Shown here in pieces: positions 5,237 through 40,420 of a stretch of DNA of 64,000 bases; position 1 is the stretch's first letter; each line of letters starts with the position of its first letter. Made by a program: the position numbers and the translations under genes. The DNA lies in assembly GCA_004431415.1 (NCBI GenBank), contig QPMI01000395.1, positions 682,001 to 746,000 of the forward strand. The letters are read 5' to 3'. The notes under the pieces were generated by a model. The model saw nothing but the letters and a program-made list of their open reading frames with translations. It had not been told where the DNA came from and ran no database searches. This DNA is from Cyanophora paradoxa CCMP329. Lineage: Eukaryota; Plantae; Glaucophyta.

Positions 5237-8200
5237 TCAGCCGCCGAAGGCCCCGTTGATGCGGAGGCGCTCGAGGGTGAGCTGCGACCCGACGTCCTCG
5301 AGGGCCCCACCCTCCGCAAGGCGCTGGACGGCGCGCGTCTGAGCCAGCGCCGCCCCGTGAGGGAAGCAGGAGGGGCGGGGGCAAAGGAAGAGTAAGAAAC
5401 CGCACCTCGTCGTCAGCGGCGGGGGCGGTCGGCTCGCTGGTCGGCGGCGCCGGGGTGGAGGCGGCCCCGCTGGTGGGGGCGGCGTCGAGGGCAGTGTCGA
5501 GGGTCGCGCGGGCGGCGGCGAGCTCCTCGAGCACGCGGCGGGCCTCCGCCTCGTCCGCCCGCGCCGCCGCGAGGGCCGCCTGCGCCGCCGCCGCCCGCTC
5601 CGCCGCCGACTTGTTGAGGGCGTCGAGCGCGGGGCGCGCCGCCTCCGCCAGCGCCCGCTGCGCCGCCTTGACGACCGCCGGGGACGAGACCGCCGCCGCG
5701 GCCGCCCGCGCGAAGGCGGCGGCCGCCGCGTCGGCGGGGCGGCCGGCCCGAAGCCGGCGGCGGCGAGGGCGGCGCGGTCGACGGAGTAGGCGACGCGCTG
5801 CTTCTCGGCTGCAACAGTTTCGACGACTGGCACCTCCTTGACCTGCGCCGCCCGGGGTCGGAAGCGGTCTCACTGGCGGAGGAAGGGCTGGCTTTGGGGC
5901 CGGGGCTAAGGGCATTGGGTGGGGTGGGTGGGGTGGGTGGGGGGGGGGGGGTGGGGGGGGGGTGGGGGGGGGGTGGGTGGGGGTGGGGGGGGGGGGTGGG
6001 GGACGGGTGGGATCAAGAGCAGCGCCGCGCACCTTCGTCACCGTCCGCTGCTTCACCACCGGCTCCACGCACGGCTCCTGCGGCTGGGGATCAGAAGCGG
6101 CCCGGGCCGGAAGGGGTACAGGGCGGTTCGGGTTCGGCTCGGGGTTCAACTGTTCAGGCGTGGAAAGCGCACCAGCGTGTGCTCGTTGACGTGGCGACGG
6201 CCGACAATTATTCCGAGCAGGCCTGGCACTTCGACTTGTCGAGTTTTTATCTCGTAGAGGCCGCCTTCCGTCGCGTTCCGCCTTCCTGCCACCAGCATAA
6301 CACCCAGCACTGACCACGGCCAGAACGCGTGCTCGTCGTCGTCTCTCCACGTGCGCACGGGCACGTCCTCCATGTACTCCTCTGGCACTGCGAACGCGAG
6401 GGCTCGCCGCGGGCGGAGAAGACACGGCAGGGGCGAGCGCGCACCCTGCTTCTTCACGACACGGGTGCGCGGCTCGTGCTCGACGTACGACTCCTGCACC
6501 TCCACCTCGACCGGCCGGAGCACGGTCTTCTTCTCGGTGACCGTCTCCTTCCACTCGCGCTTCGCCGGCGGTGGGACCGCGCCCCACTGCACCGCCGGGG
6601 ACGCCCCCGCCACCGCCTCCAGCGCCGCGAGGACGGGTCCGGCGCCCAAAGCGGCGAGGGCGGGAGCCGGCACGCCGACAGCGGCGGCGGCGGCGGCGAG
6701 GCGGCCGCGAAGGCGCTCCGCGGACGGTCCGGCGAGCGCCTCCGCCGCCTTCGCGCCGGCCACGCCGGGAACGAGCCGCAGCTCGGCGGCGAGGTACCGC
6801 TCGACCGCCGTGCGCAGCTCTGCCGCCCGCGCCGCCGCCTCCGCCTCCGTTCCCTCCCCACCGCATCCCCCATCCGCCTCCAGAGCAGCGGCGTCGAAGC
6901 GGGCGACGGCCTCAGGCCAGTCGAGTCTATTCCGTGCCGCCGCCCGCGCCGCCGCGTCGCCGCTCGCCAGCGCCGCGCCCGCCGCCAGGACGGCTTGGAC
7001 GCGGTGCGACAGGGCCGCTTCGAAGGGCCCCGCCGCGAGCAGCTCCGGCAGCTCCAGCCCCGCACTCACCGCTGCGCCCCGGCCAGTCAGACGCGCCGGG
7101 GCCGCCGCCAGCGGCGCGGGGGAGGCCGCACCGCGCGAGAAGCTCTCGGCGCACGCGAGCGCTTCCGCAGCAGCGTCCACAGCTCCGGCGCCCTCCTCAG
7201 CGGCAGCCACAGCTCCCGCCAGCTCCGCCTCGGCGCGAACTCCTTGCGGACCTGCGCGGAGTTCGGGTGCGGCTCGGGGTTCAACTGTTCAGGCGTGGAA
7301 AGCGCACCAGCGTGTGCTCGTTGACGTGGCGACGGCCGACAATTATTCCGAGCAGGCCTGGCACTTCGAATTGTCGAGTTTTTATCTCGTAGAGGCCGCC
7401 TTCCGTCGCGTTCCGCCTTCCTGCCACCAGCATAACACCCAGCACTGACCACGGCCAGAACGCGTGCTCGTCGTCGTCTCTCCACGTGCGCACGGGCACG
7501 TCCTCCATGTACTCCTCTGGCACTGCGAACGCGAGGGCTCGCCGCGGGCGGAGAAGACACGGCAGGGGCGAGCGCGCACCCTGCTTCTTCACGACACGGG
7601 TGCGCGGCTCGTGCTCGACGTACGACTCCTGCACCTCCACCTCGACCGGCCGGAGCACGGTCTTCTTCTCGGTGACCGTCTCCTTCCACTCGCGCTTCGC
7701 CGGCGGTGGGACCGCGCCCCACTGCACCGCCGGGGACGCCCCCGCCACCGCCTCCAGCGCCGCGAGGACGGGTCCGGCGCCCAAAGCGGCGAGGGCGGGA
7801 GCCGGCACGCCGACAGCGGCGGCGGCGGCGGCGAGGCGGCCGCGAAGGCGCTCCGCGGACGGTCCGGCGAGCGCCTCCGCCGCCTTCGCGCCGGCCACGC
7901 CGGGAACGAGCCGCAGCTCGGCGGCGAGGTACCGCTCGACCGCCGTGCGCAGCTCTGCCGCCCGCGCCGCCGCCTCCGCCTCCGTTCCCTCCCCACCGCA
8001 TCCCCATCCGCCTCCAGAGCAGCGGCGTCGAAGCGGGCGACGGCCTCAGGCCAGTCGAGTCTATTCCGTGCCGCCGCCCGCGCCGCCGCGTCGCCGCTCG
8101 CCAGCGCCGCGCCCGCCGCCAGGACGGCTTGGACGCGGTGCGACAGGGCCGCTTCGAAGGGCCCCGCCGCGAGCAGCTCCGGCAGCTCCAGCCCCGCACT

Positions 8201-9840
8201 CACCGCTGCGCCCCGGCCAGTCAGACGCGCCGGGGCCGCCGCCAGCGGCGCGGGGGAGGCCGCACCGCGCGAGAAGCTCTCGGCGCACGCGAGCGCTTCC
8301 GCAGCAGCGTCCACAGCTCCGGCGCCCTCCTCAGCGGCAGCCACAGCTCCCGCCAGCTCCGCCTCGGCGCACTGCGCTTCAATCAGAGTGCGTGACGAAA
8401 CTGGGCGGGGCGGGAGGAAAGCGGGTGTGTGCCTCGGCAATGGCCGCGAGGCCGGCGCGGATCTCGTCGGCGGCGGAGGCCGCGAGCTGCCGCCTCGTGT
8501 CGACGTAGAGGGCGCGGAGCCACTCCTCCACCGCCGCCAGTCCGCTCTGCGCTGTCTGAGCGACGGCGGGGGGCAGAGGGCGCAGCGCCGCACCTTCTCG
8601 AGGCCGGCCCGGGCCTTGGCGTGGATCAAATCTTCCGCCTTCTTCAGCCAGTTCTCGCCAAAGAGCTCGACCTTCTCGGCATCCGTGGCGCGGCCGAGCA
8701 AGTAGAGGCGAGCCCGCAGCGCCCCCCGCGCGCTGAACGGCAGGATGCACTCCGGCGAGATCTCCACCTGCACAGGTGTCAGGCGCGAAGCGTTCGAAAA
8801 CGAGCTCGCGCACCCCGGCCTTGCGAAGCTGCGCGCTCACCCACGCCGGCGCGTCGGCGGGCTTCACGCTGCGCTGGTCGTCGGAGCTGTACGCGTCCAC
8901 CTGCGGCGCTCTGCAGTGAGAGATCTGCGGCGGGCTGGGAGGCGCTACGAGGAGGGGTGGACCTTGTTGAGGAGGACCAAGACGCGGGGCCAGGCCTCCC
9001 CGGGGCGGGTCTCGAAAAGGTGCGGGCGCTGCTGCATTAACTGCACGAGCGCCGCCGTCCCCTCCGCCTCGTTCATCTTCGTGTACTCCATCATGACGAT
9101 CACGTAGTTCGCGATGCGGAGGATGCTGTCCGACGCGGCGCTGAGGTGCTCGGCCCCGAACTCGCCCTTGCCCGCCACGTCGAAGAACGAGAAGCGCGCT
9201 TCGTTTGCCGGCAGAGTCTTGAGTAGCTCCAGCGGGGCCTCGACCGTCAAGCGCCCTGCGCGCGGGATCGAAAGATCGCTCGAGGATGGAGCGCGCAGCG
9301 CTGACCGTCGAAGCGAGCCAGGGTGTCGGGATTTGCGCGGGCCTCGTCGTTGATCGCCTCGAGCCGCGCGCGTATGGCCTCTGGTCCCTCCACCAGCTCC
9401 TCGGGCTGGCCACCCGATCCAGCGATGCGGAGAAGCGGAGTTGTGCGGGCCGGTGCATGCAGGACCTCGACCGGCACCGCCGTCTCAGGCTGCACGGCGC
9501 TGCGGAACACAATGAGATGAAATCCAAGTGGCGTTTAATCGATAGGTGCGCACGCGGGCTGCAGGCGATGGCCAAGGAAGGCGTTGAGGGACGTGGACTT
9601 GCCGGCCTTGAAGCGGCCCATGACGGCCACAACGAAGCGCGACTCATCTAGAGAGCGCTTCGTGCTATTGAACATTGGGATGCGCTCGTTGGCGGCCTCC
9701 GCGAGGGCCGATGCGAGCTGGGCGGCGTCTGGAGTGCGCCGGCGACCCGCACGCCCGGCTGCCTGCGCTGCGGACGTGGCTGCATTGATCGCAGCGACGA
9801 CCGAAGCGACGATCGCAGCGACGACCCCGTGAAGCTGCAT
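5237..9840 (-). CDS. Bacterial-dynamin-like GTPase, type A, copy A1 (multi-exon, with an internal 1.1-kb duplication)
   Basis: G1 FVVAVMGRFKAGKST, G2 region QPETAVPV, G3 FFDVAG, EYTKMNEAE, G4 LLNK|VD. BDLP-type PFSARGALRAR and SGLAAVEEWLRALY motifs, Ala-rich helical trunk, charged hairpin insert. Last exon ..LERLRINGAFGG*. Start codon approximate. Confidence 0.8.
6135..8370. repeat. Near-identical tandem duplication inside A1 (6135-7236 vs 7270-8370, period 1135 bp)
   Basis: Direct comparison found only about 2 differences (one substitution, one C-run indel). It covers the trunk and tip exons. Confidence 0.9.
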
Positions 9841-10158
9841 TCGAGGACGAATTCGCCGGACAAGGCTGGAGCAGCGGGAATGCTAGCGCAACTGAGACAG
9901 GCGCGATCGAGCTGCATCTTCTGGAGGTCTCTTGACCGCTTTGAATTCAACTGACCTGGTCGAGAGACGCACAGTCAAGCAACGGTTGGGGTACCTGTTA
10001 AGATCAAATCACAGGTCAAGCGACCCAAGTCACTCGTCGAAGCGCAGGCGAGATGGAGCGGTACTCGCAGAGAGGCCGAGACCTCACTCGCTTTCGGTCA
10101 GCCACCCAGCGAAGCCAGCCAGGCCGCGCTCGTCACCGCAAGCGACGCAGCGATATAG
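9841..10158. promoter_or_regulatory. Bidirectional promoter region between A1 and B1
   Basis: ~320 bp between divergent starts. Contains GGGGTACCTGTTAAGATCAAATCACAGGTCAAGCGACC (9988-10025), conserved in all three pairs. Confidence 0.6.
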
Positions 10159-13100
10159 ATGGCCGTCTTCAGCACCCTCATCCCTCCCGCAACGAAGCTG
10201 CGAGCGGCTTCAGCGCGGCTTCAGCAAGCGGCGATGTCGCGCACGTTCGCGGTTCAAAGCGAAGGCGCCTCCCAGCTCAGCGAGAGCTATGCCGCGCTCG
10301 GGACCTGCGCGAAGCACACGGAGGAAGTCCTGAGCGATCTCCTGAAGACTCTCGGTCCGCTTCTTTTCACTCGCAGTTGGCCACGCGATGGCGCTGACCT
10401 TCCGCATGTCTGCCAGAGGAGGCGCTGTTCAAGGTCGTCTTCGTGGGCCGCATCAAGACGGGAAAGAGCACGATCATCAACTACTTCATCGGGCGCCGCC
10501 TGCAGCCGTCGTGCGCCCTCGTTTCGTTCGTCGCCTTTCAGCGGACCTGATCTCGCCCTGGCAGGTCCGTTGAGCCGCAGACGGCGTTTCCCGTGGCGTT
10601 CGTGCACGCTGCGGTGCTACGTCTGCTGGCACTGGACGGGGCGCCATCCTCCGCCACCTTCGAACAGGTCCAGCAGCTGCTCCGCTCGGCGAACGCGGAC
10701 GCCCGCGGCGGGAACGCGCGCGCCGCGTACGCGGAGAGGCGCGTGACGGTGGAGGTCCCGCTGGAGGCGATGCGGGGCCTGCCCGACCTCGGCGGCCGCC
10801 TCGCGCTCATCGACGCGGCCGGCTTCGGCGAGAGCGGCGCCCAGCTGCTGGCGCGGGCGTCGGAGTGGGCGCTGGAGCGGGCGAACTTCGTGATCCACGT
10901 GGCGGACTACACGAAGATGAACGAGGCGGAGGACATCGCCATCCTTCAGGAGCTCCTCCGCAAGCGCCCGTGCCTCTTCCGCCGCGGCGCCGTCCTCGTT
11001 CTCCTGAACAAGGTCCGCGCCGCGCTCTAGAGCCGCCCAAAGTCGAGTTGAACACTCTGCCCCCGCGCAGGCGGACGAGCACAAGACGGACGAGCGGAGC
11101 GTGACGCCCGAGGCCGCGCCGGAGTGGTACCGCGCCCGGCTGCGGGAGGCCGGGGTGCGCTCCTTTGCCGAGGCCGCTAGCTCCGTTCGCCGACGGGCTC
11201 GCGGCAGGTGGAGCTGCCTGCGGGGAGCGTGATCGCCGTGCGGGGGCTGGACGGCCTACGCGCCCGGCTCTACCTGCAGGGCGCGGCCAGCGACGAGGAG
11301 AAGGCCGAGCTCTTCAAGGCAAGGTGGGGCAGAGGATGGCGCGAGAAGACCGACGAACAGCTTCTGGCCGAGGCGCGGGCCGTCCTCGAGCGGGTGCTCC
11401 GATCCGCCCGCCGGCGCCGCCCGTCTCTGACGATGCGCAGAGCGGGATGCCGGCGGCGGAGGGGCGGGTGCGGGCGCTGTACGAGCAGCACGGGCCGCAG
11501 CTGGCGGCCGCGGCAACCGAGGAGCTCCGCGACCGCTTCGCCGCCCTCCAGACCGTGCGCCGTCCGCGCCCACTGCCGCCTCCGCACCGGCAGCGCCCGA
11601 CGCTTTGCGGGCACAGGCGGCCGGGCAGACCGCCGCGGCGCTCGAGAGCGCTAAGGGCGAAGCTGACAGGCGCTTCGCGGCATCAGAGGAGATCCTCCGG
11701 GAGGCAGCCGGCGCGGAGGACGGTGAGCAAAGCAGCCTCTGGCCAAGCGCGGCATCTTCGCTAACCGCCGCGCGCAGCTGCGAAAAGCGGCGCGCGGGTG
11801 CTGGACCTCGAGGCGGCTCCGCTCTTGGCCGCGCTCTGGCGGGAGGAGGGCCCGGCGCTGGCCCGGCTCGAGGCGGCGGCGGCGGCCGCGCTGGCGGTGC
11901 TCTCGGGCTCGGAGGCGGCGCGGGCGGCGGCGCGGCGGGCCCTCGCCGACCCCGCTCTGGTCGCCCGCCTCGACGCGGCGGCCGCCGAGGCGGACGGGCT
12001 CTGCGGGGGCGAGGCGGAGACGCGCGAGGCGGCGGAGCGGCGGCGGGAGGCGCTCTGGGCGGCGGGGCGCGCGTACCTGGCCGCCGAGCTGGAGGCGGCG
12101 GCGGGCCGCGTGGCCGCCGGCCTCGAGGCCCGCCTCGCCGCCCGCTCCGCCGCCCTCGCCGGGCCGCTCGCGGCGCTCGCCGGGCGCGTCGGCGCCCCCG
12201 CGCCCGCGCTCGCCGCCGCCCTCGCGGAGCTCACGGCGGCCGGGTCGGCGTACCGCGCGGCGGCGCGGGCGGGGGCGGAGGCGGCGGGGCGGCTGCTGCC
12301 GGCGGCGGCGCCGGGCGGCGGCATCGTGGAGCGGGTGTGGGAGGAGGCGCGGGCGGTGGAGGACGTGCGGATGGTGCCGCGCGAGTACGAGACGACGGAG
12401 ACGGTCGTCGAGGCGGTGGAGCGCACCCGCACCGTCGAGAAGATCGGCGCGCCCCGCCGCTCGTCGGAATCCTCCCAGGTTTTGCGGCGCTGACGCCTGG
12501 CGCGCAGATCCCTTTGCTGCCAAGAAGATGGTCACCCGCACACGATACGTTCCCGTTCGCTCGAGCGGGGGCGGCGGCGGCGTTGGTGGCGCTGTCGGCG
12601 CTGTCGGCGCGGCTGGCGTCGCTGGAGCTGTCGGGGCGGCGGCCGCTGCCTTAACGAATCCTGTGACTGGCATCGTCGTGGGCGTCGCGAGCCTCGGCAA
12701 GCTCGTGGCTGGTGAACGGGAGAAGGGCTACGATCTCCGCGCGGTGGAGTACCAGGAGGAGGTCGACTGCGTCGAGTACCGGCCCGTCCAGAAGGAGGCG
12801 AGCGTACCCCGTTCCGTCTCCTCCCCCCGCGCCTTCTAAATCTTCCCCAGGAGAAGTACGTCGAGCACGTGCCGAAGGAGAAGACCGTGACAAAGGCGCG
12901 GCCCTGTACCCCTCCCCGGCGCGCGTACCCCTCTCACGGGTACGGCAGGTGCGGGAGGAGCCGGAGCGCTACGAGCGGGTCGTGCACGAGCGCAAGGCGG
13001 CCTACAGCGTTGACCGCGCCGGCCTCGCGCGCGCCGCCGAGGCCCTCGCGGCCTCCGCCCGCTCCGCTGCCCTCCGCGCCCTCGAGGAGGCCGCCGCCGC

Positions 13101-13290
13101 GCCCGCCGTCGTCCGCGCGGCGCACGCGGCGGCGGCGGCGGCGGCGGCGCCGGGGCTCGGGGCCCTCGCGGCGGCGGCGCGGGCGCGGGCGGAGGCGGAC
13201 GGGGCGGCGAGCGGCGCGGCGGCGCGGGACGCGGCGGCTCTGGAGGCGGCCCGCGCGGAGCTCGCTGCCGTCGCCGCCGCCGCCTTTTAA
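10159..13290 (+). CDS. Bacterial-dynamin-like GTPase, type B, copy B1 (multi-exon)
   Basis: G1 FKVVFVGRIKTGKST, G2 region VEPQTAFPV, G3 LIDAAG, DYTKMNEAE, G4 LLNK|AD, SGMPAAEGRVRALY. Helical trunk. Hairpin insert with Gly/Ala-rich hydrophobic tip GGAVGAVGAAGVAGAVGAAAAALTNPVTGIVVGVASLGKLVAG. Stop TAA 13288-13290 followed by an AT-rich 3' region. Confidence 0.8.
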
Positions 13291-13925: not shown

Positions 13926-16900
13926 CTACGAATCCGTGTCTGCGGCGCCGAGGGCCGCTCGGGCGGCTTCGAGCTCCTCGAGCACGCGGCGGGCCTCCGC
14001 CTCGTCCGCCCGCGCCGCAGCGAGGGCCGCCCGCGCCCCCGCCGCCCGCTCCTTTGCCGCCTTGTTGAGGGCCTCCAGCGCAGGGCGCGCCGCCTCCGCC
14101 AGCGCCCGCTGCGCAGCCTTGACGACCGCCGGGGACGAGACAGCCGCGGCGGCCGCCCGCACGACGGCCGCGGCCGCCTCGTCGGCGGGGCGGCCGGCCC
14201 CGAAGCCGGCGGCGGCGAGGGCGGCGCGGTCGACGGAGTAGGCGACGCGCTGCTTCTCGACGGGCACGTCCTTCACCGTCGGCAACTCCTTCACCTGCCG
14301 AAGAGGCGGGCGTCGAGGGCGATTCCGCTGGATGGAATGGTGTGCCGCGCACCTTCGTTACCGTTCGCTGCTTCTGAACCGGCTCCACGTACGGCTCCTG
14401 CGGCCGGGAATCGAACTTAAGTTGGGGGGGCGGGGAGGATGCGAGCCGGGGTACAGGGCGCACTGTGAACTCCTTTTCGACGTTCCGCACGCGCGTCTCC
14501 TTGCGGATCTCCGTCTGCGCGGGGGGTCGGGCGGGCCTCTCCGCTGCACTGCGAGGGGACACACCTCAGTGTATGGGACGTGGACAGTGTACTTGTCAAT
14601 CTGAATGCCGAGGAACCGCTTCTTGCGCGTCTCCGCTCGGAGCTTCGTAACCTGCACCGGCACATCCACTTCATACTGCTCCGGCTCTGCGCGCGCAGGG
14701 CTCGCAAAGACGCGTTAGACAGGGGCAGGGACCAGCGCGCACCCAGCTTCTTCACGACGCGGGTGCGCGGCTCGTTCTCGACGTACGACTCCTGCTCCTC
14801 ATACGTGGTAGGCTCGAGCACGGTCCTCTGCTCGGTGACTGTCTCTGTCCACTCGCGCTTCGCCGGCGGCGGGACCTCGCCCAACTGCACCGGCGGCGGC
14901 GACCCCGCCGCCGCCTCCAGCGCCGCAAGGACGAGGCCGAGGCCCAGAGCGGAAAGAGCGGGTGCCGGCACGCCGATGGCGGCGGCGTCGTCGGCGAAGC
15001 GCCCGTGAAGGCGCTCCGCGGCCGGCCCGGCCAACGCCTCGGCCACCTTGGTGCCGGCCACGCCGGGGACGAGCCGCAGCTCGGCGGCGAGGTACCGCTC
15101 GACCGCTGCCCTCAGCACCGCCGCCCGCGCCGCCGCCTCCGCCTCCGTCCCTTCCCCGCCGCATCCCCCGTCCGCCTCGAGGGCCGCGGCGTCGAAGCGG
15201 GCGACGGCCTCGGGCCAGTCGAGTCTATTCCGTGCCGCCGCCCGCGCCGCCGCGTCGCCGCTCGCCAGCGCCGCGCCCGCCGCCAGGACGGCTTCCACGC
15301 GATGTGACAGGGCCGCTTCGAAGGGCCCCGCCTCGAGCAGCTCCGGCAGCTCCAGCCCCGCGCTCACGTCTGCGCACCGCCGGTCACGCGCCGTCACCGC
15401 TACCGGCAGGTACGGGGGGAACGCCGTAGCGCGGGGGAGGCCGCACCGCGCTCGAGGCTCTCGGCGCACGCGAGCGCCGCCGCCGCCGCCTCGTCGGCCG
15501 CCGCGCCCTCCGCAGCTGCCTCCGAGGCTCCCGCAAGCTCCGCCTCGGCGGGCTGCGCATCGATCAGCGTGCGCGACGACGCCCACGTGGGGAACGGGGC
15601 ACCCTCGAGATGGCCGCGAGGCCGGCGCGGATCTCGTCGGCGGCGGAGGCCGCGAGCTGCCGTCTCGTGTCGACATAGAGGGCGCGCAGGCGCTCCTCCA
15701 CCGCCGCCAGTCCGCTCTGCGCCGAGTCAGCGGCAAAGAGCGGAGGATGACAGGGGGCTCGCACTTCGTTAAGAACAGCCACCGCCTCAGCCTGCAGGGC
15801 CTCGTCGGTCTGGGTCCGCCAGTCCTCGCCAAATGCATCTTTGAAGAGCTCGGCCTTCTCGGCGTCCGCGGCGCGGCCGAGCTTGTTCAGCCGCGCCCGC
15901 AGCGCCCCCCGCGCGCTTAAGGGCAGGATGCACTCCGGCGGGATTTCCACCTGTGCAACCCTCAGAGACAAATGCGCCTTGGATAGAGACGGCGCATGCG
16001 CACCCCGGCGTGGCACAGCTGGGCGCTCACCCACGCCGGCGCGTCGGCGGGCGTCACGCTGCGCTGTTCGTCGGAGCTGTACGCGTCCACCTGCGGCGCT
16101 CGGTGTTGAGAGAGCTGCAGCGGGCTGGCAGGCGAGGCACGACGGACCTTGTTGAGGAGGACCAGGACGCGGGGCCAGGCCTCGCCGGGGCGGGTCTCGA
16201 AGAGGTGCGGGCGCTGCTGCTTCAGCTGCGCGAGCGCCGCCGTCCCCTCCGCCTCGTTCATCTTCGTGTACTCCATCACGACGATCACGTAGTTCGCGAT
16301 GCGGAGGATGCGGTCCGACGCAGCGCTCAGGTACTCGGCCCCGAACTCGCCCTTGCCCGCCACGTCGAAGAACGAGAAGCGCGTCTCGTTCGCCGGCAGA
16401 CCCTCGAGAAGCTCCAGCGGGGCCTCGACCATCAGGCGCCCTGCGCGCGGGATCGCAAGATCGCTCGAGGATGGAGAGCACAGGGCGGACCGTCGTAGAG
16501 AACGAGGGTGTCGGGATTTGCGCGGGCCGCGTCGTTGATCGCCTCGAGACGCGCGCGGATAGCTTCTGGCCCCTCCACCAGCTCCTCGGGTTGGTCGCTC
16601 GCTCCCGCGATGCGGAGAAGCGGCGTTGTGCGGCCCGGCGCATGGAAGACCTCGACCGGCACCGCCGTCTCAGGCTGCACAGCGCTGCGGGGGGGAATGA
16701 GATAATGTGAGCATGCCGTCTGATCGGAAAGAGAGCTCGTACGCGGGCTGTAGGCGATAACCGAGGAAGGCGTTGATGGTCGTGGACTTGCCGGCCTTGA
16801 AGCGGCCCACGACGGCTACAACGAAGCGCGACTCATCTAGAGAGCGCTTGGTGCTATTGAAGACCAGAACATATTCGCTGGCGGCCTCCGCGAGGGCCGA

Positions 16901-17359: not shown

Positions 17360-20300
17360 ATGGCCGTCTTCAGCACCCTCATCCCTCCCGCAACGAAGCT
17401 GCGAGCGGCTTCAGCGCGGCTTCAGCAAGCGGCGATGTCGCGCACGTTCGCGGTTCAAAGCGAAGGCGCCTCCCAGCTCAGCGAGAGCTATGCCGCGCTC
17501 GGGACCTGCGCGAAGCACACGGAGGAAGTCCTGAGCGATCTCCTGAAGACTCTCGGTCCGCTTCTTTTCACTCGCAGTTGGCCACGCGATGGCGCTGACC
17601 TTCCGCATGTCTGCCAGAGGAGGCGCTGTTCAAGGTTGTCTTCGTGGGCCGCATGAAGACGGGAAAGAGCACGATCATCAACTACTTCATCGGGCGCCGC
17701 CTGCAGCCGTCGTGCGCCCTCGTTTCGTTTGCCGGCTTTCCACGGACCTGATCTCGCCCTGGCAGGTCCGTTGAGCCGCAGACGGCGTTTCCCGTGGCGT
17801 TCGTGCACGCTGCGGTGCTCCGTCTGCTGGGGCTGGACGGGGCGCCATCTTCCGTCTCCTTCGATCAGGTCCAGCAGCTGCTCCGCTCGGCGAACGCGGC
17901 CGCCCGCGGCGGGAACGCGCGCGCCGCGTATGCGGAGAGGCGCGTGACGGTGGAGGTCCCGCTGGAGGCGATGCGGGGCCTGCCCGACCTCGGCGGCCGC
18001 CTCGCGCTCATCGACGCGGCCGGCTTCGGCGAGAGCGGCGCCCATCTGCTGGCGCGGGCGTCGGAGTGGGCGCTGGAGCGGGCAAACTTCGTGATCCACG
18101 TGGCGGACTACACGAAGATGAACGAGGCGGAGGACATCGCCATCCTGCAGGAGCTCCTCCGCAAGCGCCCGTGCCTCTTCCGCCGCGGCGCCGTCCTCGT
18201 CCTCCTAAACAAGGCCCGTGCCGCGTTGTAGGGCTGCAGACAGCGTCGCTAACGGATCGGTCCCCGCGCAGGCGGACGAGCACAAGACGGACGAGCGGAG
18301 CGTGACGCCGGAGGCCGCGCCGGAGTGGTACCGCGCCCGGCTGCGGGAGGCCGGGGTGCGCTCCTTGTTCGGGGGCCGCTAGCTCTGTCCGCCGACGGGT
18401 TCGCGGCAGGTGGAGCTGGCGGCAGGGAGCGTGATCGCCGTGCGGGGGCTGGACGGACTACGCGCGCGGCTCTACCTGCAGGGCGCGGCCAGCGACGAGG
18501 AGAAGGCCGAGCTCTTCAAGGACGCCTTCGGCCGGGGCTGGCAGGGACAGACGGAAGAGAACCTGCTGGTCGAGGCTCAGGCCGTCCTCGAGAAGGTGCT
18601 CCGATCCGCCCGCCCGCCAGCGCCGCCCGTCTCTGACGCGGCGAAGAGCGGGATGCCGGCGGCGGAGGGGCGGGTGCGGGCGCTGTACGAGCAGCACGGG
18701 CCGCAGCTGGCGGCCGCGGCGACAGAGGAGCTCCGCGACCGACTCGCCGCCCTCCAGATCGTGCGCGCCCGCGCCCACTGCCGCCTCCGCGCCTGCTGCG
18801 CCTGACGCTTTGCGGGCACAGGCGGCCGGGCAGACTGCCGCGGCGCTCGAGAGCGCTAAGGGCGAAGCCGACAGGCGCTTCGCGGCATCAGAGGAGATCC
18901 TCCGGGAGGCAGCAGGCGCGGAGGACGGTGAGCAAAGCAGCCTCTGGCCAAGCGCGGCATCTTCGCTAACCGCCGCGCGCAGCTGCGAAAAGCGGCGCGC
19001 GGGTGCTGGACCTCGAGGCGGCGGCGCTGCTGGCCGCGCTCTGGCGCGAGGAGGGCCCGGCGCTGGCCCGGGTCGAGGCGGCGGCGGCGGCCACGCTGGC
19101 GGTGCTCTCGGGCTCGGAGGCGGCGCGGGCGGCGGCGCGGCGGGCCCTCGCCGACCCCGCTCTGGTCGCCCGCCTCGACGCGGCGGCCGCCGAGGCGGAC
19201 GGGCTCTGCGGGGGCGAGGCGGAGACGCGCGAGGCGGCGGAGCGGCGGCGGGAGGCGCTCTGGGCGGCGGGGCGCGCGTACCTGGCCGCCGAGCTGGAGG
19301 CGGCGGCGGGCCGCGTGGCCGCTGGCCTTGAAGCGCGCCTCGCCGCCCGCTCCGCCGCCCTCGTCGGGTCGCTCGCGGCGCTCGCCGGGCGTGTCGGCGC
19401 CCCCGCGCCCGCGCTCGCCGCCGCCCTCGCGGAGCTCACGGCGGCCGGGTCGGCGTACCGCGCGGCGGCGCGGGCGGGGGCGGAGGCGGCGGGGCGGCTG
19501 CTGCCGGCGGCGGCGCCGGGCGGCGGCATCGTGGAGCGGGCGTGGGAGGAGGCGCGGGGGGTGGAGGACGTGCGGATGGTGCCGCGCGAGTACGAGACGA
19601 CGGAGACGGTCGTCGAGGCGGTGGAGCGCACCCGCACCGTCGAGAAGATCGGTGCGCCCCGCCGGCTGCACGCGGCCGCGCGGCGTTGACGCCCGGCCCG
19701 CAGAGCCCTTCGCGGCGACGAAGATGGTTACCCGCACGCGGCAGGTGCCTGTCCCCGTCGGCGGCGGCGGCGGCGGCGGCGGCGACGGGGACGGCGCTGC
19801 GGGCGCGGCTGCCGCGCTGGGGAATGCGGCGGCCACAGCAGCGGATCCTGTGGTCGGCGGCGTCCTGGCGGGCGCAGGCGCGATCGTCGGCCTCCTGGGA
19901 GGCGGGCGGCGCCAGCAGGGGTACGAGCTTCGCACCGAGGAGTACCAGGAGGAGGTCGAGTCCGTCGAGTATCGGCCTGTCCAGAAAGAGGCGAGCGTAC
20001 CCCCTTCCATCTCCTCCCCCCTGCGCCTTCTGAACCTCCCCCAGGAGAAGTACGTCGAGCGCGTGCCGAAGCAGAAGACCGTGAAAAAGGCGCGGCCCCG
20101 CACCCCTCCCCAGCGCGCGTACCCCTCTCACGGGTACGGCAGGTGCGGGAGGAGCCGGAGCGCTACGAGCGGGTCGTGCACGACCGCAAGGCGGCCTACA
20201 GTGTCGACCGCGCCGGCCTCGCGCGCGCCGCCGAGGCCCTCGCGGCCTCCGCCCGCTCCGCCGCCCTCCGCGCCCTCGAGGAGGCCGCCGCCGCGCCCGC

Positions 20301-29732: not shown

Positions 29733-30660
29733 GCGCGTATCCGGCCGCCTCGGCGGCCTCGCCCGGGCGCTCGCTCCGCCGGCCTTGCCGGGCCGCTCGC
29801 GGCGCTCGCCGCGCATCGGCGCCCCCGCGCCCGCGCGCCCTAGGCCTCGCTGCCGCCGTCTCGAGCTCTAGATCTAGATCTGATATCGATCATGAGCTCG
29901 CAGCGGCCGGGGCGGCGTACCGCGCGGCGGCGCGGCGTACCGCGCGGCGGGGGCGAAGGCGGCGGGGCGGCTGTTTCCGGTGGCGGCGCCGGGCGGCGGC
30001 CGCGGCATCGTGGAGCGGGTCTGGGAGGAGGCGCGGGCGGTGGAGGACGTGCGAGTGGTCCCGCGCGAGTTCGAGACGACGGAGACCGTCCTCGAGGCGG
30101 AGCTCGAGGAGCGCACCCGCACCGTCGAGAAGCTCGGTGCGCCCCGGCCCGCCGGCTGAACGCGGGCGCCGGCGCGCTGTGCTGACGCGTGGCGCGCAGA
30201 GCCCTTCGCGGCGACAAAGATGGTCACCCGCACGCGATACGTTCCCGGCCAAGAAGACAGAGCCCGTCCCGGCCCGTCCCGGCCCTCTCACGGGGTTACG
30301 GCAGGTGCGGGAGGAGCCGGAGCGCTACGAGCGGGTCGTGCACGACCGCAAGGCGGCCTACAGCGCCGACCGCGCCGGCCTCGCGCGCGCCGGCGCCGCC
30401 GAGGCCCTCGCGGCCTCCGCCCGCTCCGCCGCCGTCCGCGCCCTCGAGGAGGCCGCCGCCGCCGGGCCGCGCCCGCTGTCACAGTGTCGTCCGCGCGGCG
30501 CACGCGGCGGCGGCGGCGGCGGCGGCGCCGGGGCTGGCCGGGGGCCCTCGCGGCGGCGCGGGCGCGGGTGGCCGGGCCATGGAGGCGGATCCGGACCGTC
30601 GGACGTCGACGGGGCGGCGGGCAGCGCGGGACGCGGACGTGGCTCCTCCGGCGCGTCCCC
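29733..30660 (+). pseudogene. Truncated, degenerate type-B dynamin-like fragment (3' half only, tip exon deleted)
   Basis: Aligns with B1 ~12070-13240 (VERVWEEARAVEDVRVVPREFETTET, VREEPERYERVVHDRKAAYS). No GTPase exons, the tip is missing, and there are many small insertions. Confidence 0.85.
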
Positions 30661-31090: not shown

Positions 31091-34000
31091 CTAGTTCGAG
31101 GGCAAGCTGTCGAGGGCCGCTCGGGCGGCTGCGAGCTCCTCGAGCACGCGGCGGGCCTCCGCCTCGTCCGCCCGCGCCGCAGCGAGAACCGCCTGCGCCG
31201 CCGCCGCCCGCTCCGCCGTCGCCTTGCTGAGGGCCTCGAGCGCGGGGCGCGCGGCCTCCGCCAGCGCCCGCTGCGCCGCCTTCACGACCGCCGGGGACGA
31301 GACAGCCGCGGCGGCCGCCCGCACGACGGCGGCGGCCGCCTCGTCGGCGGGGCGGTCGGCGCCGAAGCCAGAGCTGACGAGGGCGGGGCGGTCGACGGAG
31401 TAGGCGACGCGCTGCTTCTCGACGGGCACATTCTCGAGAGTGGGAACCATCTCGACCTGCCGCGATTCTCGGGGTTGGCGGGTGCAGCGAGCCCAACAGC
31501 TTCACATTGTGCCACACCTTCGGCACCATCCGCTGCTTCTGCACGGGCTCCACGTACGACTCCTGCGGCCGGGGGATCGAAATCGGGGGGGGGGGGGGGG
31601 GGGGGGGGCATGCGAGACGGGGTACGGGGCGCACGGAGCATGCCTCCTTGACAGGAAGCACGCGCACCTCCTTCCGAATTTCCGTCTGCGTGCAGGCCGG
31701 CGTCAGGCGGGGCTCTCTGTTACGCGGTGGAGGGCGGCACCTCGGTGTAGGGCACGTGGACCGTGTACTTGTCGATCTGAATGCCGAGGAACCGCCTTTT
31801 ACGCGTCTCGGGCTTCACTCTCTGGACTTGGACCGGCGCGTCCACCTCGTGCAACTTCGTCACTGCGCGGGGCTCGCGGCGGGCGGCGAGCGATCGCGTC
31901 GTGGGCGCAACGCGCACCTTCCTTCTCCACGGTGCGGGTGCGCACCTCGTGCTCGATGTACGATTCCACCTCCTCCACAATGGTCGGGCGGAGCACCTCC
32001 CTGTGCTCGACCTTCACGTCCGTCCACTGCCGCTTGGCGGGCTCCGGGGCCTCGCCCCACTGCAGTGGCGGCAGCTCCCCCGCCGCCGCCTCCAGCGCCT
32101 CGAGGACGGGACCGGCGTCCAGAGCGGCAAGGGCGGGGGCCGGCTCGCCGACCGTGGCGGCGGCGGCGGCGAGGCGGCGGTGAAGGCCCTCAGCGGCGGG
32201 CCCGGCGAGCGCCTCCGCCACCTTGGAGCCCGCCACGTCGGGGACGAGTCGCCCCAGTTCATCTGTGAAGTAACGCTCGACCGCCGCCCACAGCTCCACC
32301 GCACGCGCCGCCGCCTCTGCCTCCGTCCCTTCGCCGCAGCAGGCTTCATCCGCTTCGAGAACTGCGTCTTCGAAGCGGGCGATGGCCCCGGGCCAGTCGA
32401 GTCTCTTGCGTGCCGCCGCCCGCGCCGCCGCGCTGCCGCTCACCAGCGCCGCAGTGGCGGCGAGAACGACGGCCGCGCGATGTGACAGGGCTGCTTCGAA
32501 GGGCCCCGCCTCGAGCAGCTCCGGTAGCTCCAGACCCGCGATCACCTCTGCGCCCCCGCAGGTCAGACGATCAGCCACCACCGCTGCCGCCGCCGCAGGA
32601 AGGCCGCACCGCGCGAGAGGCCGTCGACGCTAGCCAGGGCCGCCGTCGCCTCTTTAGCTGTCGTCGCGCCCTCCTCGACTGCCTTGGTCGCCCCCGTCAG
32701 CTCCGCCTCGGCAAGCTGCGCTCCGCTCAGCGAGCGGCGCGCCTCGCGAGGGGAGCGGCGGCGTGCCTTGGAGATGGCCGCGAGACCGGCGCGGATCTCG
32801 CCAGCGGCGGAGGCCGCGAGCTGCCGCCTCGTGTCGACGTAGAGGGCGCGCAGCCGCTCCTCCACCGCCGCCAGTCCGCTCTGCGCCGTCTGAGCGACAG
32901 CGGCAGAGAGCGGAGGATGACAGGGGCTCGCACTTCTTTAAGAACAGCCACCGCCTCGGCCTGCAGGGTCTCGACGGTCTGAGTTTTCCAACTCCGGCCG
33001 AAGGCCTCCCTGAACAGCTCGGCCTTCTCGGCGTCCGTGGCGCGGCCGAGCAGGTGGAGCCGTGCTCGAAGCGCTGCAAGAGCGCTGAACGGCAGGACGC
33101 ACGTTGGCGGTATCATCACCTGCGCAAACATCAGAGACGAACGCGCTTCGGGTAGAAACCGCGCATGCGCACCCCGGCCTTGCCAAGCTCCGCGCTCACC
33201 CACGCCGGCGCGTCGGCGGGCTTCACGCTGCGCTGTTCGTCGGGGTTATATGCATCCACCTGCGGCGCTCTGCAGTCAGCGAGGTGCGGCGGGCTGGGAG
33301 GCGAGACACGGCGGACCTTGTTGAGGAGGACCAGAACGCGGGGCGAGTCTCCGGGGCGGGTCTCGAAGAGGTGCGGGCGCTGCTGCTTCAGCTGCGCGAG
33401 CGCCGCCGTCCCCTCCGCCTCGTTCATCTTCGTGTACTCCATCACGACGATCACGTAGTTCGCGATGCGGAGGATGCGGTCCGACGCGGCGCTCAGGTGC
33501 TCGGCCCCGAACTCGCCCTTGCCCGCCGCGTCAAAGAACGAGAAGCGCGTCTCGCTCGACGGCAGGTCCGTGAGTAGCTCCAGCGGGGCCTCGACCGTCA
33601 AGCGCCCTGCGCGCCGAATCGGAAGATCGCTCGAGGGCGGAGTGCAGGGCGCTGACCGTCGAAGAGGGCGAGCGTGTCGTGATTGGCGCGGGCCTCGTCG
33701 TTGATCGCCTCGAGGCGCGCGCGAATACTCTCTGCCCCCTCCACCAGCTCCCCGAGCTGATCACCCGCTCCCGCGATGCGCAGCAACGGTGTCGTGCGGC
33801 CGGGAGTATGAACAACCTCAACGGGCACCGCCGTCTCTGGCTGCGTGGCGCTGCGAGGGGGAATAAGATATTATACGTTGTGTTCGATCGAAAAGAACGC
33901 GCGCACGCGGGCTGCAGGCGTTGACCGAGGAAGGCGTTGAGGGTCGTGGACTTGCCGGCCTTGAAACGACCCATGACGCCCACAACGAATTGCGACTCGT

Positions 34001-37320: not shown

Positions 37321-40300
37321 AGGATGCCGGAGGCGGCGGAGCGGCCGGCGGCGCCCTCGAGGGCGGCGGCGGCCGCGGCGAGCTCCGCGCGGGCCGCCTC
37401 CAGAGCCGCCGCGTCCCGCGCCGCCGCCCCGCTCGCCGCCCCGTCCGCCTCCGCCCGCGCCCGCGCCGCCGCCGCGAGGGCCTCCAGCCCGGTGCCGCCG
37501 CCGCCGCCGCCGCCGCATGCGCCGCGCGGACGACGGCGGGCGCGGCGGCGGCCTCCTCGAGGGCGCGGAGGGCGGCGGAGCGGGCGGAGGCCGCGAGGGC
37601 CTCGGCGGCGCGCGCGAGGCCGGCGCGGTCGACACTGTAGGCCGCCTTGCGGTCGTGCACGACCCGCTCGTAGCGCTCCGGCTCCTCCCGAACCTGCGGT
37701 ATCCCCATGAGAGGGGTACGCGCGCTGGGGTCCTGAGGAGGGGTGCGGGGCCGCACCTTTTTCACGGTCTTCTCCTTCGGCACGCGCTCGACGTACTTCT
37801 CCTGGGAGAGGTTCAGAAGGCGCATGGGGGGAGGAGATGGAAGGGGGTACGCTCGCCTCCTTCTGGACGGGCTGGTACTCGACGGACTCGACCTCCTCCT
37901 GGGACTCCTCCACGTGGAACTCGTATCCCTGCTCTCCGTCGAGAAGGAAAGCTTTTTCAATCTGGAGGCCGACGATCGCCGATTCCGCCCCGCCAGCGCG
38001 CACGTCGCGCCCAGCCGCGCCTCCATCTCCGCGGCCAGGCACCTGCTGCATGCGGGGAACCATCTTCTTCGCAGCAAAGGGCTCTGCGCGCCACGCGTCA
38101 GCGCCGCGCGCCCGCGAGCAGCCGGCGGGGCGCACCGATCTTCTCGACGATGCGGGTGCGCTCCACCGCCTCGAGGACGGTCTCCGTCGTCTCGTACTCG
38201 CGCGGCACCATCCGCACGTCCTCCACCGCCCGCGCCTCCTCCCACGCCCACTCCACGATGTCGCCGCCCGGCGCCGCCGCCGGCAGCAGCCGCCCCGCCG
38301 CCTCCGCCCCCGCCCGCGCCGCCGCGCGGTACGCCGCCCGGCCGCCGTGAGCTCCGCGGGGCGGCGGCGAGCGCGGGCGCGGGGGCGCCGACGCGCCCGG
38401 CGAGCGCCGCGAGCGGCCCGACGAGGGTGGCGGAGCGAGCGGCGAGGCGCGCCTCGAGGCCGGCGGCCACGCGGCCCGCCGCCGCCTCCAGCTCGGCGGC
38501 CAGGTACGCGCGCCCCGCCGCCCAGAGCGCCTCCCGCCGCCGCTCCGCCGCCTCGCGCGTCTCCGCCTCGCCCCCGCAGAGCCCGTCCGCCTCGGCAGCC
38601 GCCGCGTCGAGGCGGGCGACCAGAGCGGGTCGCCGAGGGCCCGCCGCGCCGCCGCCCGCTCCGCCTCCGAGCCCGAGAGCAGCGCCAGCGCGGCCGCCGC
38701 CGCCGCCTCGAGCCGGGCCAGCGCCGGGCCCTCCTCCCGCCAGAGCGCGGCCAAGAGCGGAGCTGCCTCGAGGTCCAGCACCCGCGCGCCGCTTTTCGCA
38801 GCTGCGCGCGGCGGTTAGCGAAGGTGCCGCGCTTGGCCAGAGGCTGCTTTGCTCACCGTCCTCCGCGCCGGCTGCCTCCCGAAGGATCTCCTCCGATGCC
38901 GCAAAACGGCGGTCGGCTTCGCCCTTGGCGCTCTCGAGCGCCGCAGCGGCCTGCCCGGCCGCCTGCGCACGCAAAGCATCAGGCGCTGCCGGCGTGGAGG
39001 CGGCAGTGGGCGCGGGCGGCGCACGGTCTGGAGGGCGGCGAGTCGGTCGCGGAGCTCCTCGGTCGCCGCGGCCGCCAGCTGCGGCCCGTGCTGCTCGTAC
39101 AGCGCCCGCACCCGCCCCTCCGCCGCCGGCATCCCGCTCTGCGCCGCGTCAGAGTCGGCCGGCGCCGCCGGGCGGATCGGAGCACCCGCTCGAGGACGGC
39201 CCGTGCCTGGGCCAGCAGCGCCTCGTCTGTCTGTCCTCGCCAATCCTCACCGAAGGCGTCCTTAAATAGCTCGGCCTTCTCCTCGTCGCTGGCCGCGCCC
39301 TGCAGGTAGAGCCGGGCGCGGAGGCCGTCCAGCCCCCGCACGGCGATCACGCTCCCCGCCGCCAGCTCCACCTGCCGCGAGCCCGTCGGCGGACAGATCT
39401 GACAGCCCCCGAACAAGGAGCGCACCCCGGCCTCCCGCAGCCGGGCGCGGTACCACTCCGGCGCGGCCTCGGGCGTCACGCTCCGCTCGTCCGCCTTGTG
39501 CTCGTCCGCCTGCGCGGAAACCGAGCTGTCAGCGCCGCTGTCTGCAGCGCTAAAACGCAGCACGGACCTTGTTCAGGAGGACGAGGACGGCGCCGCGGCG
39601 GAAGAGGCACGGGCGCTTGCGGAGGAGCTCCTGCAGGATGGCGATGTCCTCCGCCTCGTTCATCTTCGTGTAGTCCGCCACGTGGATCACGAAGTTCGCC
39701 CGCTCCAGCGCCCACTCCGACGCCCGCGCCAGGACATGGGCGCCGCTCTCGCCGATGCCGGCCGCGTCGATGAGCGCGAGGCGGCCGCCGTGGTCGGGCA
39801 GGCCCCGCATCGCCTCCAGCGGGACCTCCACCGTCACGCGCTTCTCCGCGTACGCGGCGCGCGCGTTCCCGCCGCGGGCGGCCGCGTTCGCCGAGCGGAG
39901 CAGCTGCTGGACCTGTTCGAGGGTGACGGAGGATGGTGCCCCGTCCAGCGCCAGCAGACGTAGCATTTCAGCGTGCACGAACGCCACGGGGAACGCCGTC
40001 TGCGGCTCAACGGACCTGCCAGGGCGAGATCAGGTCCGTCGAAAGCTGGTGAACGAAACGAGGGCTCACGACGGCTGCAGGCGGCGCCCGACGAAGTAGT
40101 TGATGATCGTGCTCTTTCCCGTCTTGATGCGGCCCACGAAGACGACCTTGAACAACGCTTCCTCTGGCAGGCAAGCGCAAGGTCAGCGGCATCGCGTGGC
40201 AAACTGCGAGTAAAAGAAGCGGACCAAGAGTCTTCAGGAGGTCGCTCAACACTTCCTCCGTGTGCTTCGCGCGGGTCCCGAGCGCAGCATAGCTCTCGCC

Positions 40301-40420
40301 GAGCTGGGAGGCGCCTTCGCATTGAACCGCGAACGTGCGCGACATCGCCGCTTGCTGCAGCAGCGCTGAAGCCGCCTGCAGCTTCGTTGCGGGAGGGATG
40401 AGGGTGCTGTAAGCGGTCAT
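37321..40420 (-). CDS. Bacterial-dynamin-like GTPase, type B, copy B3 (several 1-bp frameshifts; no stop at the position where B1 and B2 stop)
   Basis: MTAYSTLIPPATKL.., VGRIKTGKST, LIDAAG, LLNK|AD. Tip GRGDGGAAGRDVRAGGAESAIVGLQIEKAFLLDG. Frameshifts lie in G/C runs at about 38630, 38350 and 37490. Confidence 0.7.

Follow-up and report, generated by a model that had tools for sequence, protein, structure and literature searches.

The 64,000-nucleotide (nt) stretch of the Cyanophora paradoxa CCMP329 genome analyzed here (contig QPMI01000395.1, positions 682,001 to 746,000; called the window below) contains a cluster of genes for dynamin-like large GTPases. Our subject is one class of these, the type B genes, whose copies are nearly identical over most of their length and differ sharply in an exon that encodes a loop at the predicted far end of the protein (the tip). 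We consider it probable that gene conversion makes these genes uniform in GTPase head and trunk while the tip exon block escapes it and, in addition, slips under a constraint on composition only. The window has a G+C content of about 70%, and its introns are short and spliced. Self-comparison reveals a repeated unit of about 7 kb, each example of which carries two divergently oriented large-GTPase genes, one of type A and one of type B; the start of the B gene lies about 300 nt from the A gene, on the opposite strand. Three type B copies (B1, B2 and B3) and one fragment lie within the window (Table 1). The splice joints of B1 were taken from contigs of three RNA-like runs and, together with one further intron, give an open frame of 11 exons; the joined, spliced models were used for translation and substitution rates, and database searches and folding were done with single exons or database proteins. 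The database proteins that equal the gene models are Cyanophora paradoxa entries of EukProt. Our B1 model is the same as P0002 except for the choice of start and one splice donor; P0012 (B2) shares 88% identity with P0002, and B3 makes up the first part of P0001, a 2424-amino acid (aa) fusion prediction.

An earlier reading, made from the letters of the window alone (the sequence-only reading), had claimed that B1 and B2 are almost identical genes with sharply different tips, and this is borne out. In a three-way alignment of the B copies scored in 60-nt windows, identity is 0.93–1.00 across most of the gene, and there is a single deep valley at B1 positions 12435–12728, where B1–B2 identity is 0.52–0.77 and identity to B3 is 0.17–0.78. 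In the tip core itself B1 and B2 are 0.59 identical with 15 gap columns, and identities to B3 are 0.30–0.35; the three tip peptides quoted by the sequence-only reading are exact, and each is encoded in frame where it had been placed in B1, B2 and B3. Between B1 and B2 the upstream 228 nt are identical (1.00), exons 1–4 and 6–8 are 0.96–1.00 identical, and exon 9, which contains the tip, is 0.68 identical; introns 1 and 7 are identical (1.00) and introns 2, 4, 5, 6, 9 and 10 stand at 0.84–0.94. The diverged block has a sharp upstream edge at the junction of exon 8 and intron 8 (B1 and B2 have an identity of 1.00 over the final 60 nt of exon 8, and B1 intron 8 is 0.61 identical to that of B2 and 0.64 to that of B3), and downstream the divergence declines gradually. 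The outcome that was named as counting against the sequence-only reading, a tip no more diverged than the neighbouring introns or neutral low-complexity sequence, is found in part: the tip core (0.59) is hardly set apart from intron 8 (0.61) or intron 3 (0.64), but it is from intron 9 just downstream of the tip exon (0.89), and the tips are themselves microsatellite-like.

The tip is the largest, though not the sole, break in identity among the B genes. The 58-nt intron 3 of B1 has the same length as its counterparts in B2 and B3 and is 0.64 and 0.66 identical to them, respectively, between flanking exons that are 0.97–0.99 identical, and part of exon 5 has a B1–B2 identity of 0.83. Just past the GTPase domain (helices 278–311 of the structural model described below) there is an exonic patch, at 11319–11380 in B1, 18521–18582 in B2 and 39199–39260 in B3, in which the protein differs in all three copies and the B2 and B3 proteins resemble the A-type sequence. 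Conversion from an A gene into a B gene at the exon-5 patch was considered and rejected; at the DNA level B3 matches A2 at 74 of 108 positions and B2 matches A2 at the same number, so neither is closer.

Table 1. Type B genes and their parts in the window
Feature	Coordinates	Strand	Remarks
B1 gene	10159..13290	+	11 exons, 857-aa model; P0002 (832 aa, Cyanophora paradoxa) begins at the second Met; intron junctions from spliced contigs, frame open once spliced, Dynamin_N match
B1 promoter, exon 1 and intron 1	9931..10416	+	B1 and B2 100% identical, 486 nt without a difference
B1 intron 3	11013..11070	+	second patch, in which B1 is unlike B2 and B3
B1 intron 8	12447..12507	+	sharp upstream edge of the diverged block; RNA-like contig joint 12445>12507
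B1 exon 9	12508..12797	+	end of outgoing arm strand, tip, start of returning arm strand; two contigs with 0 differences
B1 tip core	12561..12716	+	52 aa
B2 gene	17360..~20566	+	P0012, 860 aa; B1 exons mapped on B2 give an open frame
B2 exon 9	19704..19990	+	287 nt, in frame; by coordinate mapping
B2 tip core	19757..19909	+	51 aa
B-type pseudogene fragment	29894..30568	+	blastn pieces; alignment shows no tip core, returning arm or intron 9
B3 copy	37362..40420	-	transcribed; coding exons have four 1-nt deletions; first part of P0001 in the annotation
B3 tip core	37938..38033	-	33 aa

A contrast of this kind could be produced by the assembly itself, if paralogs had been collapsed or cross-polished so that the identity of the flanks is false and only the tip has stayed distinct. 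The assembly consists of long-read contigs of a repeat-rich and GC-rich genome, and the 1-nt deletions of B3 could be consensus errors, but independent data largely refute this possibility, and we regard it as very improbable. Two RNA-like contigs match the B1 tip exon (12507–12798) without a difference and run on into both flanking exons, and a genomic contig from an independent 2012 run spans B1 12418–12948 with 0 differences. Every variant letter listed in the independent runs is a B2 or B3 allele, and both B2-specific and B3-specific letters are present in the RNA-like contigs; in addition, in one contig exons 9 and 10 together occupy 272 nt between exon 8 and exon 11, a length compatible with B3 alone because of its short exon 9. 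Since these copy-specific letters and this span occur in independent contigs, B1, B2 and B3 all exist as real copies and all are transcribed. Intron 8 of B1 is of the GC-AG type, the equivalent introns of B2 and B3 are GT-AG, and it is spliced out. GC-AG in place of GT-AG is found at introns 8, 9 and 10 of B1 (12447, 12798 and 12896) and at introns 3 (18214), 9 and 10 of B2, and removal of all three of these B1 introns is seen in the spliced contigs.

The variable sites of the three B copies can be classed by which copy is the odd one out, and the resulting patterns are clustered: there are 146 adjacent pairs of the same pattern, against 105 ± 8 in shuffled data, and 0 of 10,000 shuffles reach 146. 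Over the 5' 500 nt B1 and B2 do not differ, and each variable site sets B3 apart; without this block the observed clustering is reached by 2 of 10,000 shuffles, and elsewhere in the gene there are runs in which B1, B2 or B3 is the odd copy. The site patterns of exon 9 give no clean topology there, with private changes in all three copies. Whatever else has acted, recombination is required for such a mosaic. The A genes provide a yardstick, as A1 and A2 belong to the same two tandem units as B1 and B2; their proportion of synonymous sites that differ (pS) is 0.21, and their DNA identity is 60–96% per 100 nt. Because the A genes of these units are far more diverged than the B genes, the near identity of the latter is explained as secondary homogenisation. 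Concerted evolution of tandem paralogs can leave regions that escape gene conversion, and the two features by which we recognise it, clustered segments with conflicting histories and homogenised non-coding sequence, are both found here.

The B proteins belong to the dynamin superfamily of GTPases, within the BDLP/mitofusin/IniA class. The Pfam family PF00350 (Dynamin_N) matches P0002 with 38.5 bits and P0012 with 40.0 bits (cut-off 27), and the translated model contains the G1 P-loop G-R-I-K-T-G-K-S-T, the G3 motif D-A-A-G and the G4 motif N-K-A-D. Among solved structures the only sequence matches are BDLP (2J68, the best, E 7.5e-4) and the Campylobacter DLP. An AlphaFold2 model (mean predicted local distance difference test score, pLDDT, 71.6; head and trunk mostly 75–95) consists of a GTPase domain and long helical bundles (helices 262–556 and, running back beside them at the C terminus, 742–831). 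Helices 527–556 and 742–769 enclose two predicted strands, each some 59 residues long (567–625 and 682–740), the outgoing and returning strands of an arm, joined by a loop (626–681) that is the tip; model confidence is low in these distal parts (pLDDT 44–65 in the arm and 28–48 in the tip). Foldseek matches the model to IniA, mitofusins 1 and 2, SynDLP, BDLP and the Campylobacter DLP pair with E values of 1e-10 to 1e-7, and with probability 1.00 for IniA, MFN1/2, SynDLP and BDLP.

In BDLP of Nostoc punctiforme the paddle binds lipid through hydrophobic residues, which enter the outer leaflet of the membrane (PMC2862293). The B proteins resemble BDLP (2J68/2W6D; Foldseek E 1e-8) in being large GTPases with a helical neck and trunk and in having an insertion, a putative membrane-contacting element in the B proteins, where the trunk helices that run out and those that run back meet; they differ in that sequence identity is about 15%, that a predicted β-hairpin arm of 59 + 59 residues or so with a Gly/Ala-rich loop of about 50 residues stands in place of the compact helical paddle, and that the Cyanophora genes are eukaryotic and spliced. 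The B insertion is hydrophobic and occupies the topological position of the paddle, with the β arm and Gly/Ala-rich loop modelled at pLDDT 28–65, and the predicted tip probably inserts into membranes. The top structural match is IniA of Mycobacterium smegmatis (6J72, E 5e-10), a membrane-active protein with the BDLP fold (PMC6715688); its gene is bacterial and single, with no paralog mosaic, and we found no report in the literature of a β arm or Gly/Ala-rich tip in IniA. DLP1 and DLP2 of Campylobacter jejuni (5OWV), two distinct dynamins of bacterial type, function together in a hetero-oligomer (PMC6162298). The A and B genes, head to head on a common promoter region, recall this pair, but tips and arms are not alike, and a partnership between A and B proteins is conjecture.

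An exhaustive search of 1.84 billion representative proteins with the GTPase exon (149 aa) found 11 proteins at E <= 0.001. The relatives whose source was looked up, or that were named by word searches, comprise seven from Cyanophora, one dynamin-family protein of the Myxococcaceae and four from metagenome or read assemblies, and judged by these matches the B-type family is very restricted in lineage. Tip types vary across the family (Trp/Leu-rich in A1, basic in A2 and Gly/Ala-rich in the B proteins). A literature search on these Cyanophora proteins found no publication. One relative of the GTPase head from outside the window, P0007 (JGI/IMG metagenome), has a C-terminal TIR_2 domain (E 9e-23), an architecture that points to a role in defence for some relatives.

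The sequence-only reading had taken the variation of the tip as the mark of an arms race or of a determinant of target specificity. The tip does lie at the membrane- or target-facing end of the protein and is its most diverged part; substitution patterns in the coding sequence do not support an arms race. Between B1 and B2, pS is 0.075 and pN (the proportion of nonsynonymous sites that differ) is 0.024 in exons 1–8. In the two arm pieces of exon 9, which align without gaps and are not low-complexity sequence, pS is 0.64 and 0.40 and pN 0.10 and 0.09 (pN/pS 0.15–0.23); in the tip core pS is about 0.4–0.57 and pN 0.22–0.30 (pN/pS about 0.4–0.7), rough values from an uncertain alignment. Throughout the diverged block, then, pN/pS remains under 1, and the divergence of silent sites is 5–8 times that found elsewhere. 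Third codon positions of exon 9 are also poorer in G+C (GC3 0.76, 0.84 and 0.77 in B1, B2 and B3) than those elsewhere (0.92–0.95; 0.93 in B1), a difference with Fisher p values of 7e-7 for B1 and 0.008 for B2; this is expected if GC-biased conversion is weaker there, or if there have been many recent AT-biased mutations.

The precedent for such an arms race is loop L4 of MxA, which is described as a rapidly evolving specificity determinant against viruses (PMC12047444). L4 of MxA/Mx1 is variable, sits where the stalk of this GTPase of the dynamin superfamily has its distal end, and decides what is engaged (PMC12047444), much as diversifying selection would have it for a B tip that contacts a changing target (a pathogen surface or a specific membrane) and in which amino acid change is favoured. 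Besides the size and distal place of the divergence, the wide range of tip types in the family and a certain flavour of defence (the TIR domain of P0007, and a neighbouring copy annotated as fused to other domains) speak for this. The signature of L4 would be an excess of amino acid change at ordinary silent divergence; what we find is pS raised from 0.075 to as much as 0.4–0.64. Compared with L4, the B tips have diverged silent and intron sites, pN/pS below 1 and a hydrophobic, low-complexity sequence. Since silent sites and neighbouring intron sites have diverged as well (the non-coding intron 8 equally so), an arms race is not supported. Moreover, the tips are driven by repeats, B1 and B2 retain their composition and hydrophobicity, and the most deviant tip, that of B3, belongs to a frameshifted copy. 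We therefore consider diversifying selection improbable, and the arms-race reading, attractive as it is, premature, as the contrast comes mostly from the homogenised flanks.

The tip cores of B1 and B2 are alike in kind. In that of B1, Gly makes up 31%, Ala 25% and Val/Leu/Ile 27% (83% for these five together), and 2 residues are charged; in that of B2 the shares are 39% for Gly, 27% for Ala and 20% for Val/Leu/Ile, and 4 residues are charged, the first half being poly-Gly/Asp and the second half hydrophobic. Both have a glycine run at the start, a central (N/D)-P-V-x-G turn (N-P-V-T-G in B1 and D-P-V-V-G in B2) and Gly followed by basic residues at the end, and we take them to be most like Gly/Ala-rich fusion peptides. 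The maximum 19-residue Kyte-Doolittle hydropathy is 1.73 in B1, 1.84 in B2 and 0.96 in B3. P0006, a Cyanophora relative with 29% identity, has a different hydrophobic segment between glycine runs in the same alignment columns. Across these aligned tips the architecture (hinge, greasy stretch, Pro turn, greasy stretch, hinge) is kept, and the sequence is not. The label Gly-zipper-like given to the tips by the sequence-only reading does not hold, and we dropped the glycine-zipper pattern ((G/A/S)xxxGxxxG) as a description of them, because G-x3-G pairs are no commoner than in composition-preserving shuffles (5 against 4.3 ± 1.5 in B1 and 9 against 7.0 ± 1.7 in B2). The B1 tip is enriched in G-x2-G (9 against 4.4 in shuffles), owing to its 9-nt repeat.

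Repeats are prominent in both tips. In B1 a perfect 9-nt unit is present 2.6 times (100% match) along with a 27-nt period at 12587–12650, B2 has a (CGG)12.7 array at 19759–19796, and all tip indels are multiples of three. One might therefore ask whether local hypermutability alone is enough, with microsatellite slippage and indel-associated, error-prone repair raising substitutions for about 100 nt around and no special history of conversion. The tandem repeats, the many indels that are nevertheless in frame, an arm pS above the A1–A2 baseline, a lower GC3 that fits AT-biased new mutations and a divergence that fades gradually downstream would all agree with this. It does not account for the sharp upstream boundary at exon 8/intron 8 or for the equal divergence of intron 3, which has neither repeat nor indel; the mosaic of tree patterns along the gene requires recombination anyway, and B1-type letters in the outgoing arm of the pseudogene suggest that the variants are old. 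We think hypermutability by itself unlikely, although less so than diversifying selection, and treat it as a serious rival.

Escape from conversion, combined with slippage, remains the account that we favour. Repeated gene conversion would hold the paralogs at 97–100% likeness in promoter, head and trunk, with most introns included, and the block of intron 8 and exon 9, not being overwritten, would diverge along its full length at silent, intron and amino acid sites, with slippage in the Gly/Ala codon repeats producing in-frame changes of tip length. If the tip loop, rich in Gly, Ala and Val and with glycine runs on either side, dips into the lipid bilayer in the manner of a paddle or fusion peptide, it would need the right composition, length and central Pro turn, and no fixed sequence. 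Homogenised flanks next to a loosely constrained, slippage-prone segment would then produce most of the sharp contrast at the tip, without adaptive hypervariation. What the data show directly are the gene models and their expression, the protein family and its class of fold, the mosaic of divergence, the higher pS and lower GC3 of the block and its tandem repeats; both the membrane insertion and the reason why conversion spares this block are things that we infer. The B genes share with other cases of concerted evolution with escape their mosaic trees, an intron similarity that equals that of exons, a GC3 that is higher where the copies are homogenised, and an untouched, diverged island. The general pattern is known; here the equivalent of a dynamin-like paddle would form the unconverted island in concertedly evolving paralogs, and in the literature we found no paper on escape from conversion in dynamin-like GTPases.

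Several observations weigh against this account. The pS of the exon-9 arms (13 differences in 26 synonymous sites, a small number of sites) exceeds even the A1–A2 average of 0.21, so the age of the duplication alone is insufficient, and the block must be older than the tandem duplication or mutate faster. Conversion that skips the 58-nt intron 3 between near-identical exons is without explanation. The alignment of the tip core is uncertain and its pS and pN correspondingly rough, and the arm and tip, the putative membrane-inserting part, are modelled at pLDDT 28–65. Finally, the comparison comprises two intact copies and one that is probably broken, from a single strain, and selection may keep the tips different. 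In its most specific form, such selection would maintain different contact tips on a GTPase shared through conversion, interchangeable "warheads" on one motor, possibly for defence, with the tip exon as an old, maintained specificity cassette; the fusion of relatives to TIR and other effector-like domains agrees with this idea, which we regard as speculative and rather unlikely. If the tips are functionally distinct, the locus would be a natural tip-swap experiment on the choice of membrane by dynamin-like proteins. The window also documents a lineage-restricted dynamin-like family with a long arm and a fusion-peptide-like Gly/Ala loop that evolves in concert except at its tip.

The B3 tip is unlike the B1/B2 kind; it has 9 charged residues in its 33 and is not hydrophobic. 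Compared with B1 it lacks stretches of 6, 45 and 18 nt and has gained one of 6 nt, all without loss of frame; the tip exon is in frame, but about 60 nt have been lost and an unusually A+T-rich stretch gained. Full-length and profile searches for a similar tip or a further B-type copy gave only B1, B2 and more distant relatives, and no tip donor. At 37953–37972 (minus strand) 16 of 17 specified bases of the B3 tip recur, read in the same frame, in the tips of A2 and A3 (14592–14611 and 31768–31787, both minus strand), encoding G-L-Q-I-E-K in B3 and G-I-Q-I-D-K in A2/A3. The pattern was picked after the sequences had been viewed and is a lead only; a micro-conversion from an A-type tip into B3 may have produced it. 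The 1-nt deletions of B3, called against both B1 and B2, are at the equivalents of B1 11950, 12222, 12245 and 13152 (38630, 38359, 38337 and 37491 in B3), two of the four outside homopolymers, and they shift the frame for about 98 codons of the trunk and for the C-terminal end. By its reading frame and its short, charged tip B3 is probably a transcribed, decaying copy, although the deletions may instead be consensus errors.

The pseudogene fragment had been said to have lost its tip, and its alignment agrees: intron 8 and the start of exon 9 are retained, followed by a jump to sequence like exon 10 and intron 10. Its segment at 30120–30330 is itself a mosaic, with an intron 8 like those of B2 and B3 and an outgoing arm end like that of B1, and the deletion of the tip joins two similar motifs that encode V-P.

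Among the type A genes, A2 15753–15860 (minus strand) and A4 42118–42225 (plus strand) are identical at 108 of 108 positions, 26 kb apart and in opposite orientation, which indicates that the A copies exchange sequence too. The A1 gene contains a 1.1-kb tandem duplication (6126–7236 and 7261–8370, 99.7% identity) that takes in the entire A1 tip along with some of the trunk; P0004 (1126 aa), the protein annotated for A1, holds the duplicated segment twice; this is either a very recent event or an artefact of the assembly.

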